Part shown: one piece after another, positions 6,390-51,040 of the stretch
How positions within the stretch are numbered: the stretch's first letter is position 1
How the letters are laid out: every line of letters starts with the position of its first letter
DNA from: Chlorokybus atmophyticus
Lineage: Eukaryota; Plantae; Mesostigma and Chlorokybus algae
DNA length: 64,000 bases
NCBI GenBank assembly: GCA_009103225.1
Contig: RHPI01003642.1
Location: 517,116 to 581,115, forward strand
Direction: 5' to 3'
Notes under the pieces: generated by a model
Seen by the model: the letters and a program-made list of their open reading frames with translations, nothing else
What the model was told of the DNA's origin: nothing
Database searches by the model: none
Made by a program: the position numbers and the translations under genes

Positions 6390-8902
6390 AAATGTTAAAG
6401 ACTAAATTGTAACAAAAAGGGCCTGATAGTAACGAAAGTTACTATTAGGTCCCTGTATCAAGATTACAGGTGGACTGAGCCACGACAGTCTAGATTAGTG
6501 TCCTCAGGTGCACGGCCGTTGCTAATATGTAGTCGGCCGGCAGGGAAAACATATTGCGACGAGCATACACACCTGTGTGGGCTGGAGGGGGGGCTGCGTC
6601 GCTGCATGGCTGAGCCACTGCCTGGCTGAGCCGCTAGGGGAGCAAGCCGCCTGCAAGTGTGCGGCGGTAAGAGGTGAAGAGGGGGCAGGCAGGCAGCTCG
6701 GAGGAGGGGGGGTGGACCACCATAATAACAAAAACACACACATCAACACTAACAACAACAATTGCTAACAACCACCACAACCACCACATTCAAAGAGTGA
6801 GACAAACNNNNNNNNNNNNNNNNNNNNNNNNNNNNNNNNNNNNNNNNNNNNNNNNNNNNNNNNNNNNNNNNNNNNNNNNNNNNNNNNNNNNNNNNNNNNN
6901 NNNNNNNNNNNNNNNNNNNNNNNNNNNNNNNNNNNNNNNNNNNGGGGGGGGAAGGCGGGGGAGAGAGAGAAAGGCAAGCAGGCAGCACAGCACAGCACAA
7001 CCAATTCGCCGGGGCTGCCTGGAGGGTGGGAGGGCTGTGAGCTGTTACCGCTTCCTCCCTGCCGTTGAGAGGGGCACCGCCGCCGTCGCTGCGCAGCAGT
7101 ACCTGTCGCTGTCACTGCTGCGCAGCGCCTTTTATTATATACGGCGCTGGCGGCTGTCATAACTTTTCAAACAGCCACCATCGTGCCGGTGCAACGGCAC
7201 AATGCGCGGGTCGCGCGGGGTCACCGCGGCGCGCGCAGCAGGCTCGCGGTGACCGAGCGGCGGGGCGTATTGCCAACATTATAATGCAATAAATTGTTAC
7301 ATACGGAAATTGCGTCGCGCATGTGCAAAACGGCCGCGGGGGGGCGGGCATTGTTTTGGCCATGTACACACACACACAATTCTTATCATAATGTAGTAGG
7401 ATATTCAGATTGAGTAAGCAAACATCAAATATGATAATTGAACGTTTTAGCTTACAACACTTGTGAATAATTATTGCAAAAGACTTATAATTACATTACA
7501 GTCGTTATATGTGTGTAAATCGGGCAAAAACTTTGCACACCTTGCAAACAAAAATGCATGAATGCTTTGGCATATGCTGCTTGCCATAAATGTGTCATGA
7601 AAAGCGACCTGCCCGCGCCTTGCTGCCAGAGATGACTGCCATCACGAGCAATGTTGATGTGACATTCACCGTTACCAATTGTTGTCATAAGGCGACGGCC
7701 ATTACCGTATTTACCCCGTCAGAGTCCCCCCCTTTTTATACAGTCCCCCCCTCAATTTTGCCGGGGGGGAGTCTACTCGGGGGAGGACTCTATTACCACC
7801 GGGGACTTTATTATGTAGCAGACGTCACCGACTTCGTCACATGTCATTGACGAGTCACGCTTAGATAGCGTAACTCGTCACGCTTTTAACAATTAGTCGA
7901 CGCTTTGCGGTCGACTAATCGTACTAGTCGGCCGTTAGGCCTAGACCTGGTCGACGGACAAGGTCTAAACCGACTGGTGACAAGGTGTCGGCTGCCGAGC
8001 AGGCGGGTGACGCCCGCCGGAGTCGGTTTGAGTCTGCTAAGGGACCATCAAGGAGTCGGTTTAGGGTTCACAATTGTATAGCAGGTGCCGGTTTACGATT
8101 TATAAAACGCGGTTGAGGCACTGGCGGCGCAGCTGAGTGACGTAGCGCTTTAACGTGACTCACCACCAAATCGGTTGTAAAGCATTAGGTTGTAACAATT
8201 AATTACTTGAGTACATCACAGCCAATCACTTCGAATTGGCATGCTCTCAAAGCTGTAGGCTAAAAATACTATCATAATAAAAACAACCTTAACCAATACT
8301 AGCAGTATTGCTTTATTATTGTTGATGATAATATTTTTATTATTTTTATTATTCTTGTCGACATGTATATATGAATATAAATCTATAGTAATAATAATGC
8401 AATTAAATTGTATAATAAAGTCATGTGCAGGGATGTAAAAATATATTAATACATTTTACATTTACGATACATGTATACATTTATCATGAGGATGATATTT
8501 TTGGGTATATTACCATAATGTACATGGTGTGTTGTATTTCAGGCTTATGTTAACATGCAATAGTATCATAAAAATATATTATATTATATACTAAATGATT
8601 AATCTTGCATAAACATATGCACGTGTATTATATGATTGAAGCTCATCATAAGTGGCATACCAGCATTTAATATTTATTGCAAGAGTTTTATACGATTATT
8701 GCATGTTACCATATGCTACTCATATGTGGATTGTGAATACATGTATCATATGATATAAGTGTCACTATTGTATGAGAGTGTAGGCATGCAATATGCAACT
8801 TGAATGCTTACACAGCATGTGTATAATTATGTGTATGATACCGTATGTGCACGTGATGTGCACAATCATGTACTGTGTGTCTTTTACCTTCTCTCTGGCC
8901 TA

Positions 8903-8992
<90 letters not shown>

Positions 8993-9379
8993 NGTCGACA
9001 GTACGGTATTGTCTATTGCCTATCTTACCACCAGTCTTCACATGTGCAATAGTCAGACAGGTTCACCCCTTGCATGCTACATTCCTGTTACATAATCCTT
9101 ACGTGTATAGTATGTGACTGTGGGCGTGATTGCACATTGGCTGTATGACTGTACACATTCATGAGAGTGCATCAGTGCCTGACCACATGTACATTGCATT
9201 GCTTGTCAAAGTGTGTCACACATGTGTAAACTCTATGCAGCGACACGCAATGCGCAATGCCCGGAACTGCTAGTGACTGTTGCTGACTCTGCAGCTATTG
9301 CTATTTTCTTGCAAAATAGAAGCGCAATACTGTAGTCGTGTGGTTTACACTACAATAGCAACTACTCTGTGAGTTGCAA

Positions 9380-12300
9380 CTACTCTATGGGACGAGAAGC
9401 ACGAGCCAGCTCCTCGAAATGCTTAAAAAGTGCGTCCATCGATTGCTTGCGGTTGTCGCAACCCCGCCGCAATTCTTCAATCTCCTGAATCACAGCATCT
9501 GACGCCTCTTCAAAAGAATCGTTTGTGGCCTGTTGCCAAGCCTCCACTTGTGCAAGCATAGCGCCCCATAAGTGCTTTCGCCGGTTGTACATCTTGCGCG
9601 TGCGCTCTACGCCCTTGCGCCAATCCGGGCGATGTTCCTCCAACCAAAGTACCGAGGGCGTCCCAGGTGCTGGCTCACCGACAGCGTACTCGTGCCAAGC
9701 TTGCCGAACGGTCTGAATGGCACTCATGGGTCGAAGGTCATAGCGCGCTGGTTCAGGTATCTGCTCCTGTGATTCTGTAGCTGCGCCTCTGCCGGTGGCG
9801 GTGGCGGTGGCAGTGGCAGTGGCACCAGGTGCATGTGCAGTGCGAGCCTGAGCTTGCACAGGTGGTGGTGGAGGTGTCGGCTCCGAGGGAGTTGCGCGTG
9901 AGAACAGATCGCCAATGGGCCGAGACAGCACATTCATAATCTGACGAATGTCGGTAGTAATGGCCGCAATCTGCGTGGCAACCTCACTACGCATGCTACA
10001 CATGGTCTCCTCGAGACGGCTTGTTGCCACGCGCTGCCACGATGACGACTCGCGGATATCTCGAAGCAGACCGCGCAACTGTCATTTAAGCACAAACATC
10101 ACTCACGACCAACCAGTGGCATCATTGCCACCCAAGTATTTCATTTAGCTTGTCTACGCACCTGAGGGGGAATATATGTCATGCGTGGTTGCTCTGTGGT
10201 GTTGTTGCAAAAAGCTTGCAGCGTCGCTTTGTAAGCGAGAAAATCCGAGCGAGCAAAGATGGGATGACGGCAGATGTCGTGGTCTGGGCAAAAGTTGTGC
10301 CAGTATACCGCCACATCTTGCACAAGAACTACGCGCAGCCACACCAGCAACCCCAAAAAATTTTCTGCGGCAGTGTCGGTTACCGTGCTTGTTGATGGTA
10401 ACGACCTATTGATCTGCAATATATAGCGCAACAGTCAGTACAGACATGCTTTGCACCGGGGATACGCTGTTAATGTTGATGACAGCTAGAAGAACATGGC
10501 CACAATTGACGCTCACCTGCTTGATGCGCTCAAGCTCGCGATCCACCCATGGCCAAATAAGGCGCAACAAAGCCTCTGGTGGAGCCTGCGCAGCATAAAA
10601 TACAAACATATTCATTGGAGCACTATCTTGTGGTAATGCCCCCCTCACTCTGCTCATGTTTGTCATGCCATGTCATACCTTTGCTGCTCTGGGAATGAAG
10701 TAGGCCTCAAGGTCATGCTTGTCAAAACCAGCGCTTGCCAGCAGCATCTCTGTTGGCATGTTCCTCACATATGACTGCATCATCTCTCCAGCCGCCCAAC
10801 CACCAAGGCGTGCAATAGCCATGGTGTTGACCCCTTTCGCATCTGCTGCTTGCGAACCGCTCACACGACCAGCGTGGCACTTCTTCCGCACATAAAGGCC
10901 TGCTGCTTTCTGTGCTTTCTCAATATGTCCATACTGAGTGCTGTAGGAAATGGGGCTGACCAAACGCTTGCTGACTGGTCCACGCAATGCATGCGACAAG
11001 AAGCGATGATACCATTGTTGTCGTGTATCAAAGCATGGCGGATCATCATCTCGGAGATGAAAGTAATCAAACAATGTCAAGGCAGTTCCCCCGACCGCGC
11101 AAACTTGCACATTCTTGTGCCTCAAGGCGCCTATATTTGTTTCATGCCCGTTGTGGTTGGTCTTGCCGCCATCGCTTTGTATCATCATGCATGGCGCTCC
11201 GCCAGTGCTAGCGGGCCCAATCTCTTCTATACAGTCCAACCAGCAATCCGCAAAGCCTGCAATGCACACATTTTATAAGAACATGTAAAACAACCATCAA
11301 TCTGGCGCATCTATCCACACATGCATGGGCTTACCTGCTCTGCGCTGGAGCTCGCTACGTGTGATAGCAACTCTTTGCCATAGATAGTCGCTTCTGACTT
11401 GGGTGTCCGTATGCGTATTTGCCTGCATGAAGTTGACGGCAATCTTCTCGTGATCACTCTCTTTGATGCGGTCTGCCATGGTGCCAGCCTGTCTGTCTTC
11501 ATAATTGTCTCGCTTCCTGCAAAGCATGTTAGACATAAATGCGTTGGTTCATCACATCATGTACCATATACTCTTACCTTGCGCGCTTTTGTCTTTGAGC
11601 CCACGATAAAAGACCCTTCACCTCTGGGATTTTTCGCAAGCTAGGCACCTGCGTGCAGACTCTGTTCGCACCAGCACACATGCATATATGTCACACATGC
11701 ACCAAATGTCACTCGCACTTACAGGACCGTGCACTCCTTCCAAGGCGTGTTGCTGTTCAAAGGCAAGTTGCACTGCCTTCGCAGCGTTATTGAGTTGATG
11801 GTAACTCAAGTTGTTCCGATTATGCATACAAAACTTTTTGAACTTGTCCTCTGTGATGCGGTATGTATCAGCGGTTGCTCTAAGCTCCCCTCCCGCCCAT
11901 GCCCTACAATACGCATAGAACCGCTCAAGGCCACTACTGTATTGCTTCTGCGTCGCCTCACACCTAAGGTCTTTCAGAATCTGTACACAGACATATATCA
12001 ACACGCTTGCACGCACGCAATCACAGCCCCGTCCCCCTCCCCTTCGCTCCCTCTCACATGTCCGCATGCATTCAGTCTCCCCCTCCCTCTCTCCCTCTCT
12101 CCCTCTCTCCCTCCCTCTCTCTCACATGCCCGCATGCAGTCCCCCTCTCCCTCCCCCTCCCCCTCCCCCTCCCCTTCGCTTTGTCCCACATGCCAGCATG
12201 CAGTCCCCCTCCCCTTCGCTCTCTCTCACATGTCCGCGTGCATTCAGTCTCCCCCTCCCCTCCCCTCCCTCTCTCTCCCTCTCTCTCACATGCCCGCATG

Positions 12301-12721
12301 CAGTCCCCCTCTCCCTCCCCCTCCCCCTCCCCCTCCCCTTCGCTTTGTCACACATGCCAGCATGCAGTCCCCCTCCCCTTCGCTCTCTCTCACATGTCCG
12401 CGTGCATTCAGTCTCCCCCTCCCCTCCCCTCCCTCTCCCTCCCTCTCTCTCACATGCCCGCATGCAGTCCCCCTCTCCCTCCCCCTCCCCCTCCNNNNNN
12501 NNNNNNNNNNNNNNNNNNNNNNNNNNNNNNNNNNNNNNNNNNNNNNNNNNNNNNNNNNNNNNNNNNNNNNNNNNNNNNNNNNNNNNNNNNNNNNNNNNNN
12601 NNNNNNNNNNNNNNNNNNNNNNNNNNNNNNNNNNNNNNNNNNNNNNNNNNNNNNNNNNNNNNNNNNNNNNNNNNNNNNNNNNNNNNNNNNNNNNNNNNNN
12701 NNNNNNNNNNNNNNNNNNNNN

Positions 12722-12766
<45 letters not shown>

Positions 12767-12954
12767 CGCACACACACAAAAGAAATTACCTTAGCTACCG
12801 CCTCTCTGTCTGCGTCGTTAACAACCGGCTCCCCATCCTGCTCCCAAGTGCCTCCTGCACTTCGTACCCTCTCCTGCTCCGCATCAAAGTCTTCTTCACC
12901 CGCTGGTTGTTCATCTTCGTGCGTTGCAGCCCGCTTTCGCTTCCTTCCCGCCAT
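9380..12954 (-). CDS. CryptonF-type tyrosine recombinase (NDC10_II-like) with C-terminal GCR1_C DNA-binding domain, ~757 aa, 8 exons
   Basis: Exons 12954-12790, 11980-11723, 11648-11578, 11516-11335, 11256-10679, 10585-10517, 10413-10162, 10078-9380, all GT-AG and in frame; motifs NYEDRQAGT, ITRSE, GGKTNHNG, GALRHKNVQVCAVG, KKCHAGRVSG, LGGW, MQSY, YFIPRA, IWPW, LRVVLVQD, HPIF; GCR1_C-like TVRQAWHEYAVG...WRKG...YNRRK; NLS RKRKR. Confidence 0.9.
12030..12759. repeat. Pyrimidine-rich minisatellite (~165-170 bp unit, about 3 copies), N gap and (CT)n in Crypton intron 1
   Basis: tgtccgc.tgcattcagtctccccc recurs at ~12059, 12231 and 12394; (CT)n at 12722-12759. Confidence 0.85.
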
Positions 12955-14649
12955 CTGTGCAACCAACGGCAATGCTTCCTTGTGCAATAATGTGCGATAA
13001 TGCATTATGACATTGCACCGCGCACTGTGCATGCTTCGAACGCTATGCACATCACGCAACTCGCGGTAAATGTGCTGTATAGTGAGAGCCATTGTGCACA
13101 GCACATGTTACTATCAAATGGCAGCTAGCGAACACACTATTACACATGTATATACAATCAATATGGTCTATGGTCATTGTGCTTGGATGCTGATGATAAT
13201 GATGATGACTTCGGAACAGTGCAACATACCTGTTACATGCCACTAGCATAGATTGCGTCCACCAGGCCTATCAGATGACAAGCACTACGTAGAACAACGA
13301 CGGCAACACAACAGGCCAAGCAACGTCTATCAGAGCCGCAGTTCACTCAACAACCCACCGCCCCACGTAACGCCACTGCTGCTACCGCCGCCGCCGCCCA
13401 AGCCGCCCACGCCGACCAGGAGGTCAAATTTGGTTAACTAACAAGTAAATTGAGGCCACGTGCGGTGGCCCGACCGCGGTTAGCTGCCGGCCGACCGGTC
13501 GACCGGCTGGGCCGGCGGCAGAGGTCCCGCGTTACGCCAGCTGCCGTGTCTTGAGCGTAACTCGCTCGTTACCTTTAAACTCCAGCAGTTTCGGGCGGGA
13601 GGTGTCGGGCGGCCGACACCCCGCCTGTCGATCGGGCACACACATCGTCACCCAACCCGTCACTCACTCTGCCGTTTCCTTTAGGCCTAGAGGGTTTGCG
13701 GCAGCCGACGGTGCGGCTAGGCGGCGCCCAGTGGGCGCGACCGTTAAATTTACGGTTGATGGCATTGCACCGCCAGCCTGTAAACAGACGTTCATTCCAC
13801 CTATATTTTAGCCTTTTACATGCGTCCTTATGGTTTTTAAATGCATCTTATCAATTTACCATGATGCAACCAGCTAGCATAAGTGATTCGGCTGTTGACC
13901 ATGTTTGATGACGCAGTCACTAAAGCGTGCAATCAATTAGTGTTACATGGTAGAGTGGATTAGTTAGTTAGAACGAGGGTGAGTAGTGGCGGCATGTCTT
14001 TGGGGTATGGGGCCTGCCCCGACCTCGTACCGCCAAAAACGCGGCCGTTTTAACCACTAACTGTGCTGCAATTACACCGAATCTCTAGCGAATTTGGGTC
14101 GCCGTTGGTAAGCAGTTGCCGCTGAGATAGTTTTCAGCATCTATTGCGTATCTCTGCAATAATTGGCCATTTCGCTGCCTTTTTCAGCAACGGCTATTGT
14201 CACCGTTGCGATCCCATTCGATCAACTCATGCGTGACCAAATGGTGGCCTAACGATGCGCTTTTCGTTTAATTAATTCTTAACTATAAGATAATTCAGGT
14301 TAGCATTATTGTGATGGTGGTAACCTTGGCATTACATACTGAATGTTGCAGCACGTACCGTGGCGTAAACGTTACGTTGAAGATTAAGTTTTGAAACACT
14401 TAACTGCAGGTTGCCAACCATATTGCACCATATTGCAGCATATGTGCTGCATTTTGCAACACATCAGAGATATCAACATGTATCAATGTATCAATGTATC
14501 TCTACATCTATTAATATTATTTCTGTGACACATACAGATGATCAACATGCAGCCATAAGCGGCCACGTATGCAGAACTGTGCTTAATTTTTACATTTGTT
14601 GGCATGCGTTTAAACAATGGCATGTGCTTTGCACGGCCACGATCATTTA

Positions 14650-15390
14650 GGCAGATCCAACGGTGTAACGCTTGTACTCGCCGCCTAGCCAGTGAGAAGC
14701 CGGGCCGCACATACTGCCGCGCAGCCCGGCAGTCGCGGGTGCCGAGTGATGGCCCGACCAAAGCCGCACCACTACTTATCTCCGCACGTAACGTGGCAGA
14801 AACGTTAGTACTTAATGTATTATCTTAGTACATGTGGGACATGTAAATGTGCACCATGTTGTCCTCAATTTTTGCAATACATACTATATGCATAATACAT
14901 ACATTATATGCAATATATATAAATAATATGTATAAGATTACATGTATTATGTATATCATGCACATAAAAGTACGTATATATACTACTATAGTATCATACT
15001 ATTATATGCATATAATGTGTATGATGCTGTGTATCATTATATAACATATATGTACCCTATCGTGCATGTGTAATAGAATACATGTATGATGTAAGATTAC
15101 TCGTATATAAGTGCGTATTTATATCACATCTGATTTGCACTTATGGTACATATATGCTTATATGTAGTCATAAATGCATATAGTTATTAAGAGCATGATA
15201 AATAAAGTTTGTATCATTCGCATATATTCTAAGCAGTTGCATGACATGGGGATGAGCTTTGGACGGTCGAGATGTGTTTTGACAGATCGAACGGCCGAGC
15301 TTATAAGTGTTGCCTAGCCAATGAGAGGAAGGCGGGCGGCGCATACCACGCAGCCCGGCAGTCGCGGGTGCCGTATGTCACTGATGGCCG
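14650..15390. repeat. Two degenerate ~110-bp direct repeats inside the TIR element
   Basis: Identical 25-bp core cgcagcccggcagtcgcgggtgccg at 14720-14744 and 15349-15373, each preceded by gcctagcca.tgaga. Confidence 0.8.
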
Positions 15391-17073
15391 TCGTGCGTGG
15401 TGCGCGTGTGATGTGTCTTGTGCCCTAATGCCGGCCGGCCGGCCCAATCACACGCCCAATCAGCCGCACCGCTAGTTTGCACGTGTATAATGCTGATAGC
15501 ATGAAGAAAAGAAGATAATATGCATCAAGTGTCATTATTGTCCCCTTTGAGGGAAACACAGAAAGGGAGGGGGGACTCTGATGTACAAATTCACTCCCCC
15601 CCACAAATTTGCCAAGGGGGACTGTATTTGGGGGGGGACACTGACGGGGTAAATACGGTACATTCATCGCAGACATCAGCCAGACAATACAAACATATTG
15701 ATTGTTGCCTCAAAACCTTGCATTTGGTGACCCGAAGTAGCGTCGACAACGGCATGTCGCTTTCTGTCTTCCCACCATCGCCAGCACACGTGCCACAGCC
15801 GTGCGCTTCCTTTCCTCGCCAAGTTCCACCCCAAGTCCAATGCTTTCCCCACAACGTACCCAATCACCGCACCCACAACCATCAACGGTATGTCAACCAT
15901 TGCGGGCAAGCTTGTACCGTCTGCCAAGAGATTGGTTTGGCGCTGTGAAACGCGAGGGGGGCCCCGTACAGTAGCGCGCGGGCTGGTCCAGGCCGCCTGG
16001 CGGGAGCGCGGCCCGGAGGTATTGGGAGTAGACCTGGGTCATTCCGTGGGTTTGCAGCTCGACTTCCTGTTACTCCGGCTCGGGAAGGGATCCTTTCCGA
16101 GCCGGATGGGCTTGTATGCTAATATATGGCGGATCCTTCCGGAAGAAGAATGACACTAACAGGTCGGAAGTTCACGGAAATTCGTCTTACAAGCAATGCA
16201 AATGCGTGTTACTTAGCATAACCATAATATGTAATGAATTCCTGCTTGTCAGAATGTGAAAGGCATTCCACCCTAGCTTTGAGTTACAATGACAAGGTTT
16301 ACACACGTGCCGTATTTACATGGTGCGCTCATACAGCCAGTTTGTATGCTCCAAAGCCATGATCATGGTAGAAACGGATTGCAATATCATTGATGTGAAC
16401 ATTCGAATTCATTTAGCAATAAGGCATTTGCCATGTGCAATCTATCACTCAAGTGAAAGCTGATTAATACGCATGATGCATGACCAACGATATATGATAC
16501 TAGGACATACATAAACGCATATCACTTTACTGCAATATGTGGCATCATGCCAAATCAATGTGCATGTCATGGGACGCACATGCATAACGCAATATGAACG
16601 TCTTGAAGTCAGTGGCATGTATTACGTTTACTATGTGATGCATGTGGCGAGAGGCATATAATAGTGACATTTCAATACAATCTTCATTATTACGCTGTAT
16701 CGCTTTAATAAGTTTTACGTACGGTTGTTACAATATTGATTTGTAATAACAATTATGATCCGAAACTCTCAGCAAGGATTGTGGTAAGCCAAAGAGAGGT
16801 CAGTCTTGAAAGCAGCTACAGATGTTCACTTGATGTGTCCACATGTGAGGTGCTCGACTTGAATATGCAAGTTGTTGGTATGCTACTCCGTCTATCGCTC
16901 GTAAAGATGGTGACTCATGTTGAGCTTGGGGGTTGTGTGTGCACGGTATTCAGACGGTTGTTCATCATAGGTGTCTATTTTCAGTGTTCAATTGCCTTCA
17001 CGGCTTTAGTAGGTAAATGAACAGAAGTAACATTATAGATACAAAGCTTTCAAATAAACAAATGTAATAAGTG

Positions 17074-17463
<390 letters not shown>

Positions 17464-21100: not shown

Positions 21101-24100
21101 AAGCGCCACGCCCGACCTGGCGGGACTCAGCTGCAGCTCGTAGTCGGCAGGCCGGTCCGACACAACACGTAGCGTACGCGGCTCGGGGTTGCTGAGAGGT
21201 AGGTCTGATGTCACTGTGTAGATCACCTCGCTACCAGCGCGGCCGCCATCGCCTCCGATGTTGGGAACTTGGATGGTTTTGGACGTCGTCTTACGGGCCT
21301 GACAATCGATGACGATCAGGCCCTCGGACAGAGGCTCCTCTGCAACACCTTTGAGAGTAAAGAAGCTGTTCTCGCCGGAACCGCTGAAGCTCAACTGCAG
21401 CTCTGTGACACAATTGTGTCAATGACACCCACCCACACACACGCATGCACACACGCACACGCACGTCCAAATGCACACGCACATGCCCGCACATGGACGT
21501 GCACACCGCACAGCTACCTGTTACTAAGTGTCCACATCACTTCTTGCTCACCTCCGGTGCATTCTCCCATCCACGCCGGCCGGAATGTGACACTATACGC
21601 CCCGTTCTGTCCCGCGGGTACCGTCACCTCGCTCGGTCCCCCGAACGCGTTGTTTCCCGTGAGTCTCGCGGATGCCGTGAGCGGCCTGTCTCCGTTGGCG
21701 TTGACGATCGGGATGTCCTGGGAGCAGCGGCCGCGGGCGGGGCACTCGAAGTCAAGGGAGGAACGGGAGGAGGAAGAGGAGAGGGAGAGCTCGGCGTCGA
21801 GGAGACGGACGTCGAGGGGGGAAGTGAGGAGCAACCTGGTTGGATGAGGACATGTTGTTTGCGCAAGGCATTGAATGAGTTATTGAACACGCACGCACGC
21901 ACGCACGCATGCATGCATGTGCGCGCACGCATGCGCATGCACTCCAAAAGCATGCGCGCGTGCGCACACAGACGCGCACACACAACTAGCGCTATAATGC
22001 TGCAAGACCAACCTGACTGGGTACACGCCAGGGCCTTTATGGTTGAGCGTGAGCGGTACGCAGTTGCTGACAGTCACCCCAGCAACTTCACCTCCCCCCC
22101 CCCCCCCACCCCCACCCCCACCCTCTCCCCCTCCTCCTCCTCCTCCTCCTCCTCCTCCACTTTTGCCACCCGCAGGCGTCTTAGTCCCACTGCCACTGCC
22201 ACCTTCACGGGCGCCCTCGTACAGGACAACCTCGGCTGGCACAGACACGTACGGGGAGCTGCTGCGGACAGAGTACTTGACGGTACGGGAGGCAACACCA
22301 CCTTCTTGTACACCGGTTGCCCTGAAGCAGGTGTCACGCTTAGTAGTTATGTGTGCGTGTGCGTGTGCGTGCACGCATGTGTATGTGTGCCTGTGACACC
22401 AACATACACATACCTCATGATATCAGCCTGCTCCTTGATTCTGTACCCCGGGTGTCGTTCCATGAACATGCGCTTCGCAGCCTCAAATTGCTGGCTGACC
22501 CATGGCACGGGCAGCTCGCGTACGATCACGTTGTTGTTGTTGCCGGCGGATGCGCTGACAGCGGCCTCGCATTGGAAGCGCACCGGCGCGGAGGCTGCCG
22601 GCGTGGGCAGACGCGCGTCGCCGATTAGTAAGTATGTAAACTCGCCGAACTCCGCGTCCACGAAGATGAGCTGTTGAGAGAAGAGGCTGGTGAGAAGGTG
22701 AGAGAGGGCATGTGGATATGTACTTGTCAAGAATCAGTCGTATCTACATGTAAGGAAAAACGTGCACTGCAGTGAACTGGGCGCTGTACCTGGCATGCGG
22801 ACTTGCCAAAGGCAAACGGCAGGTAATGTATAGTCACCTGTAACATGGTTGCGAAGGTTTTGTTAATGCGCATATGTAGGACATTACACATACACTCACG
22901 AACAACACAACAACAGTTGTGCCAACACACCTTGCCAGTTTCTCCCTGTCGCAGTTTGAGTCTCGTCTTGTCACATCCAAAAGGCATTGGCCAGGTTGTT
23001 GTGACTGATCCGCCACCATCAACCACAGGCACACTCGGCATCTCTCCTCCCTCAGGTGGCTTTGCTACGACGCTCACAGCAAAGTCGCACTCGCCGGGGA
23101 ACGGGTTGACCACCTCCATATCCTGCGTCACATACTCATACATGGCAGCCGCTACCTCAAGCGTTCTCAGCGGCGTGCGCGAGTGCACTTGACACATGAG
23201 TGCGAACACGAGCGTAGCTGCGGGCGCCCCGGCCCCCGCGTTATTACTCTTGACTGAGGTGAGAGTCAACCTCGCCTCCTGTGCCTTAGCCACCTGCGGC
23301 GTGCACTGAACAGCAAACAACCCTCTACTCCTTGGCTCGAGCCGGATATAGCTTGCAGGAAGATCAAAGTCCTTAGCACCAGCGAGGCGTGCGAGGTACG
23401 CCACGGGACGAGTACCCGGGTTGGTTAGTTCAATGTGTTTGAGGAGAGTCTCGCCGAGACGGCCGGCGAAGGAGACAGGGGGTTGGCGAGGGATGAGTTG
23501 GGGAAGAGCGGACCAGAGGTAGAGGAGGAAGAGGAGTGATTCGCGGGGTTGAGGGCGTAATATGTCGTCTTCGTCGAGAGGGTAGGCTAGAGACAGGTCG
23601 CGGTAGAGTGATACAACAAGACGGGCGTTCTCGCGGACTTGAGACTCGTCGCGGCAAGGACGATGCAGCGCGCCCTCATTCGCACGCAATGATGGCCTGC
23701 ATAGTGGTGGTGAATGCTATCACTATGTCACACATAGGGCTCTGATGTTGTTGGGTTACTTGTACTGACCTGTGGGAGGCGAGGAGGGAGAAGAGGGCAA
23801 GGCCGTCGCGTAGGTGTGTGGTGAAGTTGGTGAGTCGGTAGTAGCACGAGGGTAGGACGATACGGAAGTGGTGGCTAGCCCAACGCAGAAGCACGCTCTC
23901 ACCCGGACTATATATGTTGCTCCCCGCATCTCCACCAACCGGCACCACAACGGGCGGGCACCCTTCCCCGCCAGTTCCCGGCAGAGCCTTGAGCGCCCTC
24001 GCCGTTACGCGTGAGAGCGCAAACACCCTCACCACCTGCGTGGCGACGGTGTACCACGCCGCCGCGGACACGTGGGCCCACACGCCTTCGAGCCTGCGCC

Positions 24101-27100
24101 AGTGGGCGATGTCGGTCTCATCAACGGCCTTGTCCTTGTCCTTGTCCTGCTCGCGGGCCGCCAGCACGCGCTTGAAGTCCTCCAAGTCAAGGAGGAACTC
24201 TGGCTTAACGGCGTTGAGGAGAGCCCCGCATGAGCGGAGGTGAACCAGGAGACGGTCGTACTGACCGAGGAGCTGCATCGCCTGCTCCTTCCTACTGTTG
24301 TGCTTGTTGCCACCGACGGTGTTACTGTTTCCGATAGAAGTCTTCGCGCCGACGCCGGCCTTGCTCCAAGCAAAGGGCTTACCAGAGAGAAGCTCCACGA
24401 GGTCGACCATCGCGCGGCCCTTGCACGCGACCATCTCCATAGGCATATTGCCGACGTCACCCCATGCACGACTGGTAGTGGCGCTCAGCCACCTCAACAG
24501 CGCTGGTGATGCACTCGCAGATGATAGAGCCTCCTCAGATACAACTGGCATGCGGAACCCTTCAACCCCAGGCACAAGCATCACTGCCTTGGATTCTGCC
24601 AACAGTCAATAACTGTTAGTTCGTTGCAAGTGTCTTTGCTTGCAGGAGGAGATAGTGTTAGGTATCTCCATCACGCACCGCTGGGAGCGTCAAGCCGCAA
24701 GAGGGATTCGTTTGTCTGCACAAAGTGGTGGGTGGTGAGAAGGCAGGCATCAGCAGTGCCGGTGACGGGTATGCTGAAGACGCCTGCGCCGTCGTCCGTA
24801 AAGTCTATCCGCGCCGTGAAGGACATCGGCTTGTCCGACACAAAGGAGACCTCCACAGGCAGCCGCGCCTTTGCAATGCCTGTGATTCAGGTACTCATTT
24901 CAGTGAGGTGTACATGTTGGGGGGTGTATCAATGGTATGATGTCACATACCAATCATGATGCCTTCGGGGAAGTGAACCTCAATGGGCACGCGTGTCTGG
25001 TCGACGGGTAGCTTGTACTTGAGCTCGAGGTTGTCGTATCCCTGGTTGATGACAGTGAACTTTGCGGTCGCTTTGACGCCGAGGGGGACCGCGGGTAGCG
25101 CCACCTCACGCGTGTCAAAGCAGAGCCGCGGCATCGCGCCCGTCCCGCGCACCTCAAGCTCGAGGTACGGCTTGTCCATCCCGGCGATGGCCAACGGGAG
25201 AGTACAGGAGTAGGTTATATTCTCACGCGGGGAGAAGACTGCACGCACTGTTGATATTTCTCCAGGTGCTAGCTTTCCCATCACAGGCACCAGCTGGAGG
25301 GCTCCCTTGAGAGCCTCCAGCGGGTCTGTGTTAAAAGACCAATCTATAACAACACTGTCGTTGTTGCGTATGGTGAAGTCAACGGCGTACGGTATCTTCT
25401 TGACGGTATCTCTCAGCACGATGCGGCTGCCAAACTCGACGCCAGTTTTGCTAAGAAGCAGCCGCGGCTTCAGCCCCTGCGCCGATACGCTCCTCGCCAG
25501 CTGGCTGTTGTCGCCGTTGCCCCCCGCGATGGTGAGAGGGAGCGGGAAGGAGAACGCCGAGGCGATACGCCGAGGACGGAAAACCATCGCGAGCTTGAGC
25601 TTCTGGTTCGGGGCGAGCGTGATGGCGTATCGGTTGAGAGAACCTGGAGGTAAATCCTGATCGTCACTGTCATGCTCCTCCTCCTCTTGCTCGACCTCGG
25701 TGGTCTCGGGGCCGTAGTCGAGCGCGAACTCGGGTCGGTCGGCAAGGTCTAGCACGAGCGACGCGGGTACAGAGCTGGTGTTGTTGAGCGAGAGGTCGTG
25801 TCGGGCGGCGCCACCAATGTACACACCCCCGAAGCTAATTTCGCCCTGCTCTACGGTCACACTGGGCACGACCGCCTCTGCTTTCACAGCAAGCTCCAGA
25901 CCCCTCTTATCACCTCCTCTGGTAACAGCCTTTACGCGTATATCCACCGGGCCCTTTGTTGTCGGCTCCAACACCAGTTCCATCTCCAATGTGGTTCCCC
26001 CACTCACTCGGCCTCTATCAGGAGTCACCTTCAACACGCCTTGCAGGGAGGCCTGGTCGATGAGGAAGACGGCGTCGTTGCCAGCGGGGTTCTTGAGCGT
26101 GACGGTGCGTGCGTGAGGCATCCCTGTGGAGACAATCCCAAAGTCCACACCCTCCTTCTCCTTGAAACCGCAGTGCCCGTCGGCCTTCTCCCCACGTAGA
26201 CGCACCCTCTTGCCCGCGCCCCCACCGCCACGCACCATCAGCGTGATGGACCCCTCGTAAGCCGCTCCCCCAGCCAATGCACCCTTACTCCCACTCGTGC
26301 TGTTCACGCCGGGTGCCCACGTAATTGTCACGGGTAGCGAGGCCTTCTTCTGCACCTCCCCGTGTTGGGGACTCACCGTGAAAGGGATGGCTGCGGGCGG
26401 GGCGGGAGTGTTGCCTGTTGGGTTGGAGCTTGGAGGTCGCTCACCCGCACCCTCCCACCAGAAGGACACCGCGTGGGCGTTGGTGTTGGTTATTACTATC
26501 GTCTCCTGAACGCTCGGGTCCCAGTTGTCCGGGCTGAATGTGAAGTCCACCTCCTCCCTGCAACCCATCAGTTCCCGCAAATAAGTAACTCACTACAATC
26601 GCATACAACATTGAATATCACATAAGCCTGTACCGTGACAGCTTTAGAGATACTGGCACGACGTCCGCCTTGACATCAAAATAGAATGTGTGCGCGGCAC
26701 CGTTGATGGAGTACGCCACAGTGCGTCGGAAGGCTCCGATTGCATTAGACACAAGAACAACATTGAATCCTGCTGTGGCTCCCGGTCCCACAACCTGCAA
26801 ACAATCCCAAAGTCACCACGACAGCGCTCAACAGCAGTAAGTCTAACAACTCTTCACCTGACAGTGAGGAGAGGTCTCGGTGAGGTCAGGGCAGCTCTCA
26901 AGGTTGAGATGCACAAGGACGGCGCGCGTGAGACCGTTGGAGACTGTGAGCCACCGCGTGGTCTGCGCTGTGGCAGACACTGGGCCAAAGTCCAGCACGC
27001 GCGGACCAACAGCCACCTTCACTATGTCCGAAGGCTGCAAGTAACGGTTGAGTAGGTAATAGTAATATGAATGACGCGCACACACACACACACACACACA

Positions 27101-30031
27101 CACATGCCTACCTGAAGAGGTGCAGCACAGTCTTTGACTTCCTGCGTTGTCGCCGGCTTGCTATGCCACCTTGATCCCCCTGGCCTTCCCTCTCCCTCCC
27201 ACGCCGGCATATTCCTCGGCCTCACCGGCGCCATCATCTCTGTATCAGGTCTCACAACGACAGCAGCACCTGCTGTTGGACCCTGTGGCAGCGGCAGCAC
27301 AGGTGGCGCGAGGCCCGCGGCGGGACGCATGCCGAGGTGGAGGTCGTCTTCGGGTGGCGGGAGAGGGAGGCTCCGCTTGTCACGCAGAGAGCGAGAGGCG
27401 CGAAGGTAAGACACGTACGCCGTACGATGCATGTGCTGCTTCTCGAGGTCCTCGGCGAGCATGGTGAAGTCCGTGATGGGACCCAAGTGCTCCTCCTCCC
27501 AAGGGTGCTTACGCTCGAAAGGTTTCAACTTGAACTCGGCGGGCGCATCAGGGTCCACGTAATGCCTCGGCTGCGCATGGTAGTGTGTGTCAGTCAGATT
27601 GTAGACACGAAAAGTGATACAACTCACTGATACAATCACCACTATACTCACTCTGATGAAATCTTCTCGGATTTTGTCGGGGCCGCCGAGTGTGTTTATT
27701 CTGGGTCCCAGGAGTGGGGCAGACCCATGTACAGAGAGGGTGAGCTCATGTAGTAGGACGCCCTCGTTGCGTGTGCTCCACACACGCACGCGCACGGTTT
27801 CACGGTGGGTTCCGAGGGCCCGCGGCGCAAAGGTCAGCACCATGTCCGCACTCTGACCCGGCTGCAGCCGCCCCCTCCCAGGCCGCGCAGCGAAGGATGG
27901 GGATGAGGAGGACAGCGTGAAGGACAACGGCACAGCTGTCTGAGACTGAAGGGATACGAGGGTGTCGAGACATGTGGATGTTGGAGTTGCCCCGAAGGAT
28001 ATCGCAATGGACGGCGATACCACCAGCTGCACACATGAGAGTCCAGTCAGTGACTTTGCTGCAAACTGTTTAGCCCTTTGGTCACTTATACTTGCCACAC
28101 GAGGTTGCGTTACTGACCCAAATCAGTCCCGAAACACAAAACATGCAGTATATATCCGTAGGGAAAACACCCATCAAACCAGTAGCTTGTGCTTGCCTGT
28201 GCTTTGCAGGCTTGTGCCGTGACCGGCAGGCGTAGTGGCGTCTCTGGCGAGCCGTCGGAGGTGACATTGAGTGCACAAGTTAGATCCTCAACGAGCGGCT
28301 CCTTCTCTGCAAGTGTGGCAAACCCTTTGGCTCTGTCCTGCTGCTTGGGCGCGAAGGTCACGGTGAACGGTGCGAAAGAGAAGGGTGGGACTGTGCCGGA
28401 GGCGGGGGAGATGGAGAAGCCCATGGTGGTGGGGTTGGCGTTGTTGGTGGCGGTGGAGTTGGAGTCGGTGTTGTCATTGGTGGGAGATGGTGATGAGGTG
28501 CTAAGAGCTAGCGTGGCGGTGTAGGTGATGGGGTTGGGGCCGGCGTTGTGCACGGCGGCGGGAAGGACGTGGCTCTCCCCGTGGCAGAGTGGGGGGAAGG
28601 CTAAGGCCAGGAGAGGCTGTCTTTGAGCCTTGAAGGTGTTGGTTGTGGCCTTAGGGTTGGGTTCAATGTCGGTGACAACATCAAATGCTGCCGGCACCGC
28701 CACAGCCGTCACCTCCACGGGCACGGCGCGTCCCTCGGGTGAAGCCCTCACGTTCACGCGGCCGTACACCGCCCCCGCTGCCCCGGACGACGCAAGCCTC
28801 GCCACCACCTCCTGTTGTCCCGCATGCATGTAAGCGTAAACAATCACGCATGCATGTTGGATTATACTATGTGTGTACCTGTCGGCTGGCGGGTGGGATT
28901 GTGCCGCTGCGCGGGTCGACATCAACAGGTACAGCCTCGCGGTCGTACTCGACCTCAAACGGCGTGGCAGCCAACCTATTCCTGTTGACTATACTGAACA
29001 CTTTCTCCCCTCCCCTCCCAGCTCCATCAACCCCACCCTCCCCCTTGTCCTGTCCACCCATAGGCACATAGCCAAAGTCGAGAGCCGCAGGCTCCACACT
29101 CAACTGACCCTCCCCTCCCCCAACCCCACCAACTCTCCCCACCAACGGCACCCCAACGCAACCCTCCTCTACCTGAACCAACAACGTGTCGAAGTAGTCA
29201 TGCTTCAAAGTGTCATTAACACCAACACCTCCCTCCCCTCCTCCTCCTTCGGGTCCTGTTGTTGTGTTGTTTGGTGGTTCGAATATCACTTCAATGGCGG
29301 CTTCGAGGCCCGGCGCAAGACGCAAGGTCTGGCTGTTGTTGGAGTGGGCCAAGCGAAAGACGGGAAGGGCGGGACGGAGGACGCGAAGCGTGCGGGCGCG
29401 GGGACTGACATTGCGGACGCGAAGGGAGAGAAGGCGGGGAGCGTGTTGAGCATCGTGCGTCTGAGGAAATGGCAAGGTAAGGGTGGTGCATGGTGTATGT
29501 GAGAATGTATCTAAGGCTCCAGTGCGCTTCCTTGCCATAACCCGTGTTTGGTGTGTTCTTCAATGGCTGATCTTGGCTGATGCTAGTTGCATGAATGTTT
29601 TTGACAGTATTGACCTTGGTTACAAACACTTGCAGTGAACACCTTACCAACATGGTCCCAACTAGATACCAGCGTGCATATTGCCTTGTTGTCATACACT
29701 GTAGGAATATCTTATGAGTTGGAATGCGCAGCAAGGTAATAATCATGGAGCGTCACCTGTACAGCTTCGAATTCCAGCTGAGCGGGGAGTACGCGCAGGA
29801 AGGAGCTCGCAGCATCTGGTGCGATTGTGGCTCCCTTGCCCCCCAGGCTGCCTCCCGTGGTAGACAGTTCTTGAGAGGCCACCATTGTTGTGGCTAAGGT
29901 ATAGATTGCTTCATTTCTGGTTGAGCCTGAGGGGTGAGAAATGCAAACCAGCCGTTGTAGCGAATGGCTTGCAGCCTGGAGCGGCCCAGTTGCAGATCAG
30001 CTGTTCAAGGTGTTGACCCCTTCTTCAACAT
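18126..30031 (-). CDS. CFAP47: Cilia- and flagella-associated protein 47 (multi-exon; ASH/Ig-like repeats and calponin-homology domains). Start codon uncertain (~29900-30031)
   Basis: N-terminal LRVLPAQLEFEAVQ/LRVRNVS...LAPGLEAAIEVIFEP; Ig-like repeats (YSINGAHTFYFDVKADVVPVSL, FGGVYIG, LKHIELTNP); CH domain VLLRWASHHF...LTNFTTHLRDGLALFSLL; C-terminal FTVSFSPREYGRVLVARLIIQTEEMDWMYEIRG. Confidence 0.9.

Positions 30032-50730: not shown

Positions 50731-51040
<310 letters not shown>

Follow-up and report, generated by a model that had tools for sequence, protein, structure and literature searches.

The 64,000-nucleotide stretch of the Chlorokybus atmophyticus assembly analysed here (contig RHPI01003642.1; hereafter the window, in whose positions all coordinates are given) harbours on its minus strand, between positions 12954 and 9380, a predicted gene of eight exons that sum to 2274 nt, equivalent to 757 codons and a TAG stop. 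The locus is very probably the single gene of a CryptonF-type DNA transposon, the predicted protein of which would combine a SAM-like region, a Cre-like tyrosine recombinase (YR) domain of the NDC10_II type and a GCR1_C domain. Exons were delimited by six-frame translation and motif placement, and all database searches, profile scoring and folding were conducted exon by exon. The exons and the first intron are as follows:

12954-12790, minus strand: exon 1, predicted; 55 amino acids with a basic GRKRKR stretch followed by an acidic run; ATG at 12954, GT donor at 12789-12788
12789-11981, minus strand: intron 1, holding a run of N bases (12495-12721), a CT-rich array (12031-12494) and (TC)19 (12722-12759)
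11980-11723, minus strand: exon 2, 86 amino acids; N-terminal SAM-like or core-binding region
11648-11578, minus strand: exon 3, 71 nt; GT..AG
11516-11335, minus strand: exon 4, carrying the box I arginine R218 (codon 11359-11357, in ITRSE)
11256-10679, minus strand: exon 5, 192 whole codons; YR catalytic core with K257, H353, R356, W379 and Y388
10585-10517, minus strand: exon 6, 23 amino acids; NDC10_II and family-profile match
10413-10162, minus strand: exon 7, 84 amino acids; end of the NDC10_II-type domain
10078-9380, minus strand: exon 8, 232 amino acids and TAG; low-complexity linker, then the C-terminal GCR1_C DNA-binding domain

Gene model and assembly blocks

All seven introns were found to have a GT donor and an AG acceptor, the latter being CAG in each case (7/7), and introns 2-7 range from 61 to 103 nt in length. 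When each exon was scored separately against a family profile built from 72 full-length relatives, the following matches were obtained:

exon 2: profile positions 78-162, E 3.6e-5
exon 4: profile positions 199-261, E 1.3e-8
exon 5: profile positions 276-447, E 2.5e-62
exon 6: profile positions 450-466, E 4.7e-7
exon 7: profile positions 475-537, E 1.6e-20
exon 8: profile positions 546-738, E 3e-17

These matches are successive and do not overlap, and their order supports the splice model independently. Exon 3 gave no significant match to the family profile on its own; since exons 2 and 4 are each supported by homology in their own frame, joining these frames requires an intervening exon whose length is 2 mod 3. 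The coordinates, the GT..AG sites and the summed exon length bear out the unbroken 757-residue frame over eight exons that had been proposed in a first-pass annotation of the window. That frame stands for exons 2-8, whereas the physical continuity of exon 1 with them is not confirmable across the N run in intron 1. The model is solid for the 702 codons of exons 2-8 and a prediction for the first 55 residues.

The N run lies entirely within intron 1, 68 nt past the donor and 514 nt ahead of the acceptor, and because the end of exon 1 and the start of exon 2 are both in phase 0, the length of this gap cannot shift the reading frame. Exons 2-8 stand alone on a 3.5-kb assembly block (8994-12494), with the N gap at one border and 89 C plus a single N (8904-8993) at the other, and exon 1 lies on the next block (12722-17098). 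Such C runs with a single N were found at three sites (8904-8993, 89 C; 17099-17327, 228 C; 50748-51004, 256 C) and look like artefactual assembly joins rather than real sequence; together with the N gaps, they split the first 18 kb of the window into short blocks. Both edges of the gap in intron 1 are pyrimidine-rich and of low complexity on the plus strand, one being a CT array with a period of 164 bp and the other (TC)19, and one repeat tract spanning the gap fits both edges, which does not amount to proof. The array (12031-12494) comprises 2.8 copies at 96% identity and runs into the gap.

Recombinase domains and catalytic residues

Pfam searches assigned NDC10_II to exon 5 (profile 72-217, E 1.9e-11), weakly to exon 6 (profile 247-263, E 0.028) and to exon 7 (profile 270-316, E 4.8e-10), the three matches being colinear. 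Exon 5 also matched Phage_integrase (profile 101-169, E 1.1e-5), exon 2 gave a sub-threshold match to Phage_int_SAM_4 (profile 16-76, E 0.0039), and GCR1_C (PF12550) was found at residues 120-204 of exon 8 (profile 6-80, E 1.8e-7, 31.8 bits versus a cutoff of 23). The HMMER comparison suggested in the first-pass annotation thus returned both of the profiles it named, with curated Pfam cutoffs exceeded on exons 5 and 7 for NDC10_II and on exon 8 for GCR1_C, and the presence of the latter domain, which that annotation had claimed, was confirmed by the family profile as well. The GCR1_C domain separates CryptonF from CryptonS, A and I. The recombinase is the only encoded protein, with no reverse transcriptase (RT), RNase H or DDE open reading frame (ORF) alongside it; the flanks of the gene (7600-9379 and 12955-15948) contain no ORF of more than 100 amino acids and no Pfam match, and an Rfam scan of 7000-16500 returned no match. 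Membership of the Starship or DIRS elements was considered and rejected, given that no DUF3435, RT or RNase H is present, that NDC10_II and Phage_integrase are the only Pfam matches for the YR, and that the unit is at most 8 kb with no cargo ORFs.

The catalytic residues of the predicted protein could be located in the motifs ITRSE (R218), GKTN (K257), HAGR (H353 and R356), GGW (W379) and QSY (Y388). In an alignment of exon 5 with 40 relatives, K31, W153 and Y162 (K257, W379 and Y388 of the model) were invariant, whilst H127 and R130 (H353 and R356) were conserved in at least 90%; R218 aligns with the conserved arginine of the family consensus llRGE. The R..K..H-x-x-R..H/W..Y set expected of a CryptonF is therefore intact in the YR catalytic domain, and the candidate residues picked out in the first-pass annotation fall on conserved family columns. 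A phmmer search of exon 5 against the PDB aligned HAGR...GGW...QSY without gaps with H289, R292, W315 and Y324 of Cre, which was a weak match (E 0.28) that agrees with the same assignment; no Ndc10 chain was returned from the PDB by this search at E <=1. The AlphaFold (AF2) model of exon 5 has a predicted local distance difference test score of 72, and tyrosine recombinases, including XerA, Cre, XerH, IntI and Tn1549 Int, accounted for each of the 28 best PDB rows, with Z-scores of 7.2 to 4.5 over residues 1-178 and with Cre matched at 182-341. As judged from its sequence, the predicted protein is a tyrosine recombinase with a complete active site, and the gene appears able to encode an active enzyme. 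The first-pass annotation had gone further in calling the element apparently active, which is not supported as stated: the data speak for potential only, with one copy in the window.

The likeness to Cre, XerA and XerH extends to the catalytic fold (Z of about 7 over 130-143 residues) and, for Cre, to the exact spacing of H-x-x-R, W and Y, whereas these prokaryotic or phage enzymes share only 13-17% identity with the predicted protein and have other N- and C-terminal domains. Given the common fold and exact residue spacing, the recombination chemistry is very likely the same as that of Cre-type enzymes. Fungal Crypton elements, of the Crypton-Cn1 type, were reportedly described by Goodwin in 2003. 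Under the Goodwin model, extended here from the family to the window gene, the recombinase would cut and rejoin DNA via a covalent 3'-phosphotyrosine link; according to Lopez-Cortegano et al. 2023 (PMC9977147), this model was confirmed for CryptonF-1_cRei in Chlamydomonas.

Relatives and descent

CryptonF elements were described from fungi and oomycetes as encoding a YR with GCR1_C and no RT (Kojima and Jurka 2011, PMC3212892). When exon 5 was searched with HMMER against 1.84 billion representative proteins, 640 relatives were retrieved at E <=0.001, the best of which was 37% identical. All of the named relatives are fungal (Emergomyces, Coccidioides, Histoplasma, Penicillium, Talaromyces, Aspergillus, Tilletia, Mycena, Favolaschia, Pleurotus and Circinella), the remainder being unnamed metagenome proteins; Coccidioides and Histoplasma are genera of the first described Cryptons (PMC3212892). 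No green-algal members were found among the 30 clusters looked up or in the neighbour list of relative P0001, which held fungal or unnamed metagenome proteins only. An exact look-up of the ATG-initiated ORF of exon 8 found no match, and the protein atlas returned only generic integrase or DUF3504 clusters.

Full-length relatives share the pair PF16787 (NDC10_II) and PF12550 (GCR1_C), and the window gene resembles the fungal CryptonF elements (and their uncharacterised relatives from Eurotiomycetes, Agaricales, Tilletia and Circinella) in this pair, in a length of about 650-800 amino acids and in the motifs GKTN, RH, HxxR, GxW and Y. The identification as CryptonF-type made in the first-pass annotation therefore holds, by the NDC10_II-type YR domain, the GCR1_C domain and the complete catalytic set. 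Unlike the fungal elements, however, the window gene is at most 35-37% identical over the catalytic core and forms a long separate branch. A tree built from 84 rows of the exon 5 region, in which its top identity was 35%, placed it on a long terminal branch (1.36) and gave it no sister with good support. With identities this low and a branch of this kind, the gene is not a recent import from any sampled fungus. Recent horizontal transfer from fungi was accordingly rejected on the low identity, the long branch and the lack of any supported nesting, and horizontal acquisition, one of the two origins proposed in the first-pass annotation, is not supported as stated. As placed by these comparisons, the gene putatively represents a non-fungal branch that lies deep within the CryptonF family.

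Among the short relatives P0011 is the nearest; it is encoded on rock-metagenome contigs, where its gene is divided between two ORFs with 54 bp between them. P0011 aligns in one continuous frame with exons 5 and 6 of the window gene, intron 5 being absent there, and at the least this intron would be either specific to the lineage of the window gene or lost in that of P0011. Compared with the fungal CryptonF elements and their relatives, the window gene has more introns, intron 5 being absent from the relative on rock-metagenome contig L001. On L001 (4788-9680), L002 and L003, a fungal-like Crypton relative consists of an NDC10_II ORF and a GCR1_C ORF, preceded on all three by the same four ORFs (of about 169, 210, 234-250 and 223 amino acids) with no Pfam matches, which could represent either additional exons of that element or cargo conserved with it. 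Two other relatives, from Talaromyces and Penicillium (P0189 and P0186), are named 'short-chain dehydrogenase' at NCBI; P0189 (1097 amino acids) has adh_short domains fused to NDC10_II and GCR1_C and is probably a gene-model fusion, the name of which then spread to pure Crypton proteins.

The second proposed origin, an overlooked plant-lineage Crypton clade, has been overtaken by the literature. Chlamydomonas reinhardtii contains two autonomous Crypton families (Lopez-Cortegano et al. 2023, PMC9977147), and in that study CryptonF-1_cRei, which carries a YR and GCR1_C, surpassed every other element of strain CC-2931 in activity; no Crypton had been seen to transpose before, and it is the only one seen both inserting and excising. 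Its ends are given there as CACCG and its target as CAYCG, its excision is described as clean, inversions and translocations are attributed to it, and a schematic shows the active Chlamydomonas Cryptons with introns (PMC9977147). By this description, both the Chlamydomonas CryptonF and the window element would be green-algal DNA transposons with a single intron-bearing gene for a YR with GCR1_C. Since an active CryptonF with YR, GCR1_C and introns has thus been published from Chlamydomonas, most of the novelty is removed; the first-pass annotation had allowed that its reading would fail if such elements proved already common in green algae, and the Chlamydomonas case takes this part of the way.

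What the locus adds is a divergent CryptonF recombinase, whose identity to any of the representatives searched does not exceed 37%, from an alga that is not Chlamydomonas. Among the papers listed by a literature search, none linked a Crypton with Chlorokybus or Mesostigma. If the host is a basal streptophyte, the known CryptonF host range in the green lineage would be widened, and an old vertical presence would be favoured over recent transfer from fungi. As an unannotated, intron-split transposon gene it should be masked or annotated as such, and an intact copy would be a candidate source of Crypton-mediated rearrangements like those in Chlamydomonas.

Inverted repeats and competing explanations

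The gene is enclosed, at the level of the scaffold, by a pair of inverted repeats of about 70 bp (hereafter terminal inverted repeats, TIRs):

7703-7772, plus strand: left arm, on assembly block 6944-8903
15593-15660, minus strand: right arm, on block 12722-17098 together with exon 1

The arms are 82% identical over 71 bp and match at 29 of their terminal 30 bp, and the TIR 20-mer has two matches in the window versus none expected. Between them lies a scaffold unit of 7,958 bp in which the recombinase gene is the only gene. The flanks read CAT/TACCG...CGGTA/CAT, such that a repeat of TA, CAT or CATT is possible with none preferred; the outermost TA is part of the palindrome itself and is hence indistinguishable, in a single copy, from a target-site duplication. 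The motif CAGTCCCCC is found once in each TIR and has five copies within the array of intron 1, with eight occurrences in the window versus 0.48 expected, and no second copy of the TIRs was detected in the window, nor any match to the 20-mer in the metagenome contigs. The TIRs additionally hold internal (C/G)AGTCCCCCC motifs in both orientations. A direct repeat of 65 bp (83%) is present in the right arm at 14683-14744 and 15312-15373, with a 28-nt core of 96% identity, and a weaker third copy lies outside the TIR at 15988-16015.

Cryptons are by definition without TIRs (PMC3212892, PMC13465315), whilst Starships carry them (PMC13465315), and in Fusarium oxysporum the element MarCry-1_FO consists of a Crypton between 16-bp mariner TIRs with a TA duplication and a DDE transposase (PMC3212892). 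The window gene could by analogy belong to a larger unit of 7,958 bp bounded by the repeats at 7703 and 15660, a reading that we consider unlikely. In one version, the Crypton gene would reside in a TIR transposon (Tc1/pogo-like, with a TA target) lacking a DDE transposase and moved in trans, as a transposase-less analogue of MarCry-1_FO; in the other, the repeats would be the Crypton's own ends, acting as inverted recombinase-binding arms, and the joint of the circle would be a palindromic lox-like site. The repeat pair is real by the counts given above, its flanks are compatible with a TA, CAT or CATT repeat, the YR gene is the sole gene between the arms, CAGTCCCCC is common to both arms and to the intron 1 array, and precedents exist in MarCry-1_FO (PMC3212892) and the TIR-bearing Starships (PMC13465315). 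Each arm, however, is on a block other than that of exons 2-8 (breaks at 8904-8993 and 12495-12721), so that enclosure holds at scaffold level only; the simple nesting of a Crypton in an unrelated non-autonomous TIR element would explain the pair equally well; the short repeat at the flanks can be read in more than one way and may have arisen by chance; the intron copies of CAGTCCCCC are tandem in a C-rich array and therefore not independent; and the lack of a second TIR copy in the window or the metagenome contigs counts against the reading as well. The window gene is like MarCry-1_FO in lying between inverted repeats with a possible TA duplication, and unlike it in that the unit has no DDE ORF, its TIRs are about 70 bp, and its linkage crosses assembly breaks; it also differs from CryptonF-1_cRei, for which the available text reports CACCG ends and no TIRs (PMC9977147). 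A MarCry-type composite proper was rejected, as no DDE or other ORF or Pfam match besides the YR gene was found between 7703 and 15660. This assembly does not discriminate between the nesting of one element in another, a composite unit and an accident of scaffolding. That this Crypton lineage is mobilised as a TIR-bounded unit in an alga, whether by its own arms of about 70 bp or by riding alone inside a pogo/Tc1-like element that lacks a transposase, seems improbable to us; were the arms the Crypton's own, the lineage would link, in structure, the Cryptons without TIRs to the Starships that bear them. The question of the enclosing repeats would be of greater consequence than the divergent recombinase gene.

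A transposon gene is also more likely than a domesticated one, given that the catalytic set is kept while known domesticated derivatives have lost theirs. Ndc10/Cbf2 and Gcr1 are catalytically dead CryptonF derivatives, and the catalytic site was likewise lost in the DUF3504 genes (PMC3212892). The window gene shares with Ndc10/Cbf2 and Gcr1 of budding yeasts the domains NDC10_II and GCR1_C, which is why these Pfam names appear here. A Crypton-derived host gene of that kind, with a DNA-binding or chromatin role and no transposition, would be consistent with the intact 757-codon frame with its seven host-type introns, with the single copy in the window and with the lack of intron 5 in the nearest short relative, a difference compatible with long residence in the lineage. 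It is nonetheless highly improbable: rather than showing loss of the catalytic residues with retention of the DNA-binding parts, the gene keeps six of six (R, K, H, R, W and Y), its GC content at third codon positions is 0.54 versus 0.58-0.73 in neighbouring host ORFs (CFAP47-type and LysM), and it is situated in the first 18 kb of the window, which are AT-richer, repeat-rich and without recognisable host genes. The suggestion in the first-pass annotation that seven introns point to long residence or domestication does not carry weight as regards domestication, since Crypton genes in intron-rich hosts carry introns, as drawn for the active Chlamydomonas elements (PMC9977147), and the relative on L001 appears split. 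Finally, the intact frame could in part be a product of assembly, if the block of exons 2-8 were a repeat contig that has been collapsed or misplaced and exon 1 came from another copy or from no gene. This would agree with the isolation of exons 2-8 between a poly-C and N join and an N gap, with the recurrence of the poly-C and N pattern at 17099-17327 and 50748-51004, which suggests artefactual joins, and with the lack of homology support for exon 1. We regard it as quite improbable, as exons 2-8 are contiguous and unambiguous with strong colinear homology, such that the recombinase is independent of any join, the CT-rich low complexity on the two sides of the gap is of the same kind, and exon 1 has the right strand and phase and a canonical donor.

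Several observations weigh against the interpretation as a single-gene CryptonF transposon and should be set beside the evidence for it. Crypton termini are short (4-6 bp) direct repeats matching the target, and neither element termini nor short terminal direct repeats are definable from one copy, which is the copy number within the 64-kb window. The start codon and exon 1 lie unsupported across the assembly gap, exon 1 matches neither Pfam nor the 72-member family profile, further in-frame ATGs occur upstream of 12954 and the start codon is thus a prediction, whilst the 3.5-kb block with the gene body could be a collapsed consensus of several copies. No close relative of exon 5 was found by HMMER (37% at most), by word-index search or by a metagenome peptide scan. 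An enclosing inverted-repeat pair is, moreover, not a Crypton feature (PMC3212892, PMC13465315).

Elsewhere in the window, the LysM ORF (555 amino acids) gave bacterial LysM matches alone when searched against the protein databases. Long ORFs at 22727-28958 on the minus strand, with CFAP47, CFAP65-type Ig, ASH and CH domains, correspond to a large flagellar (CFAP47-like) gene, and its presence on the scaffold indicates that the host has a flagellate stage.

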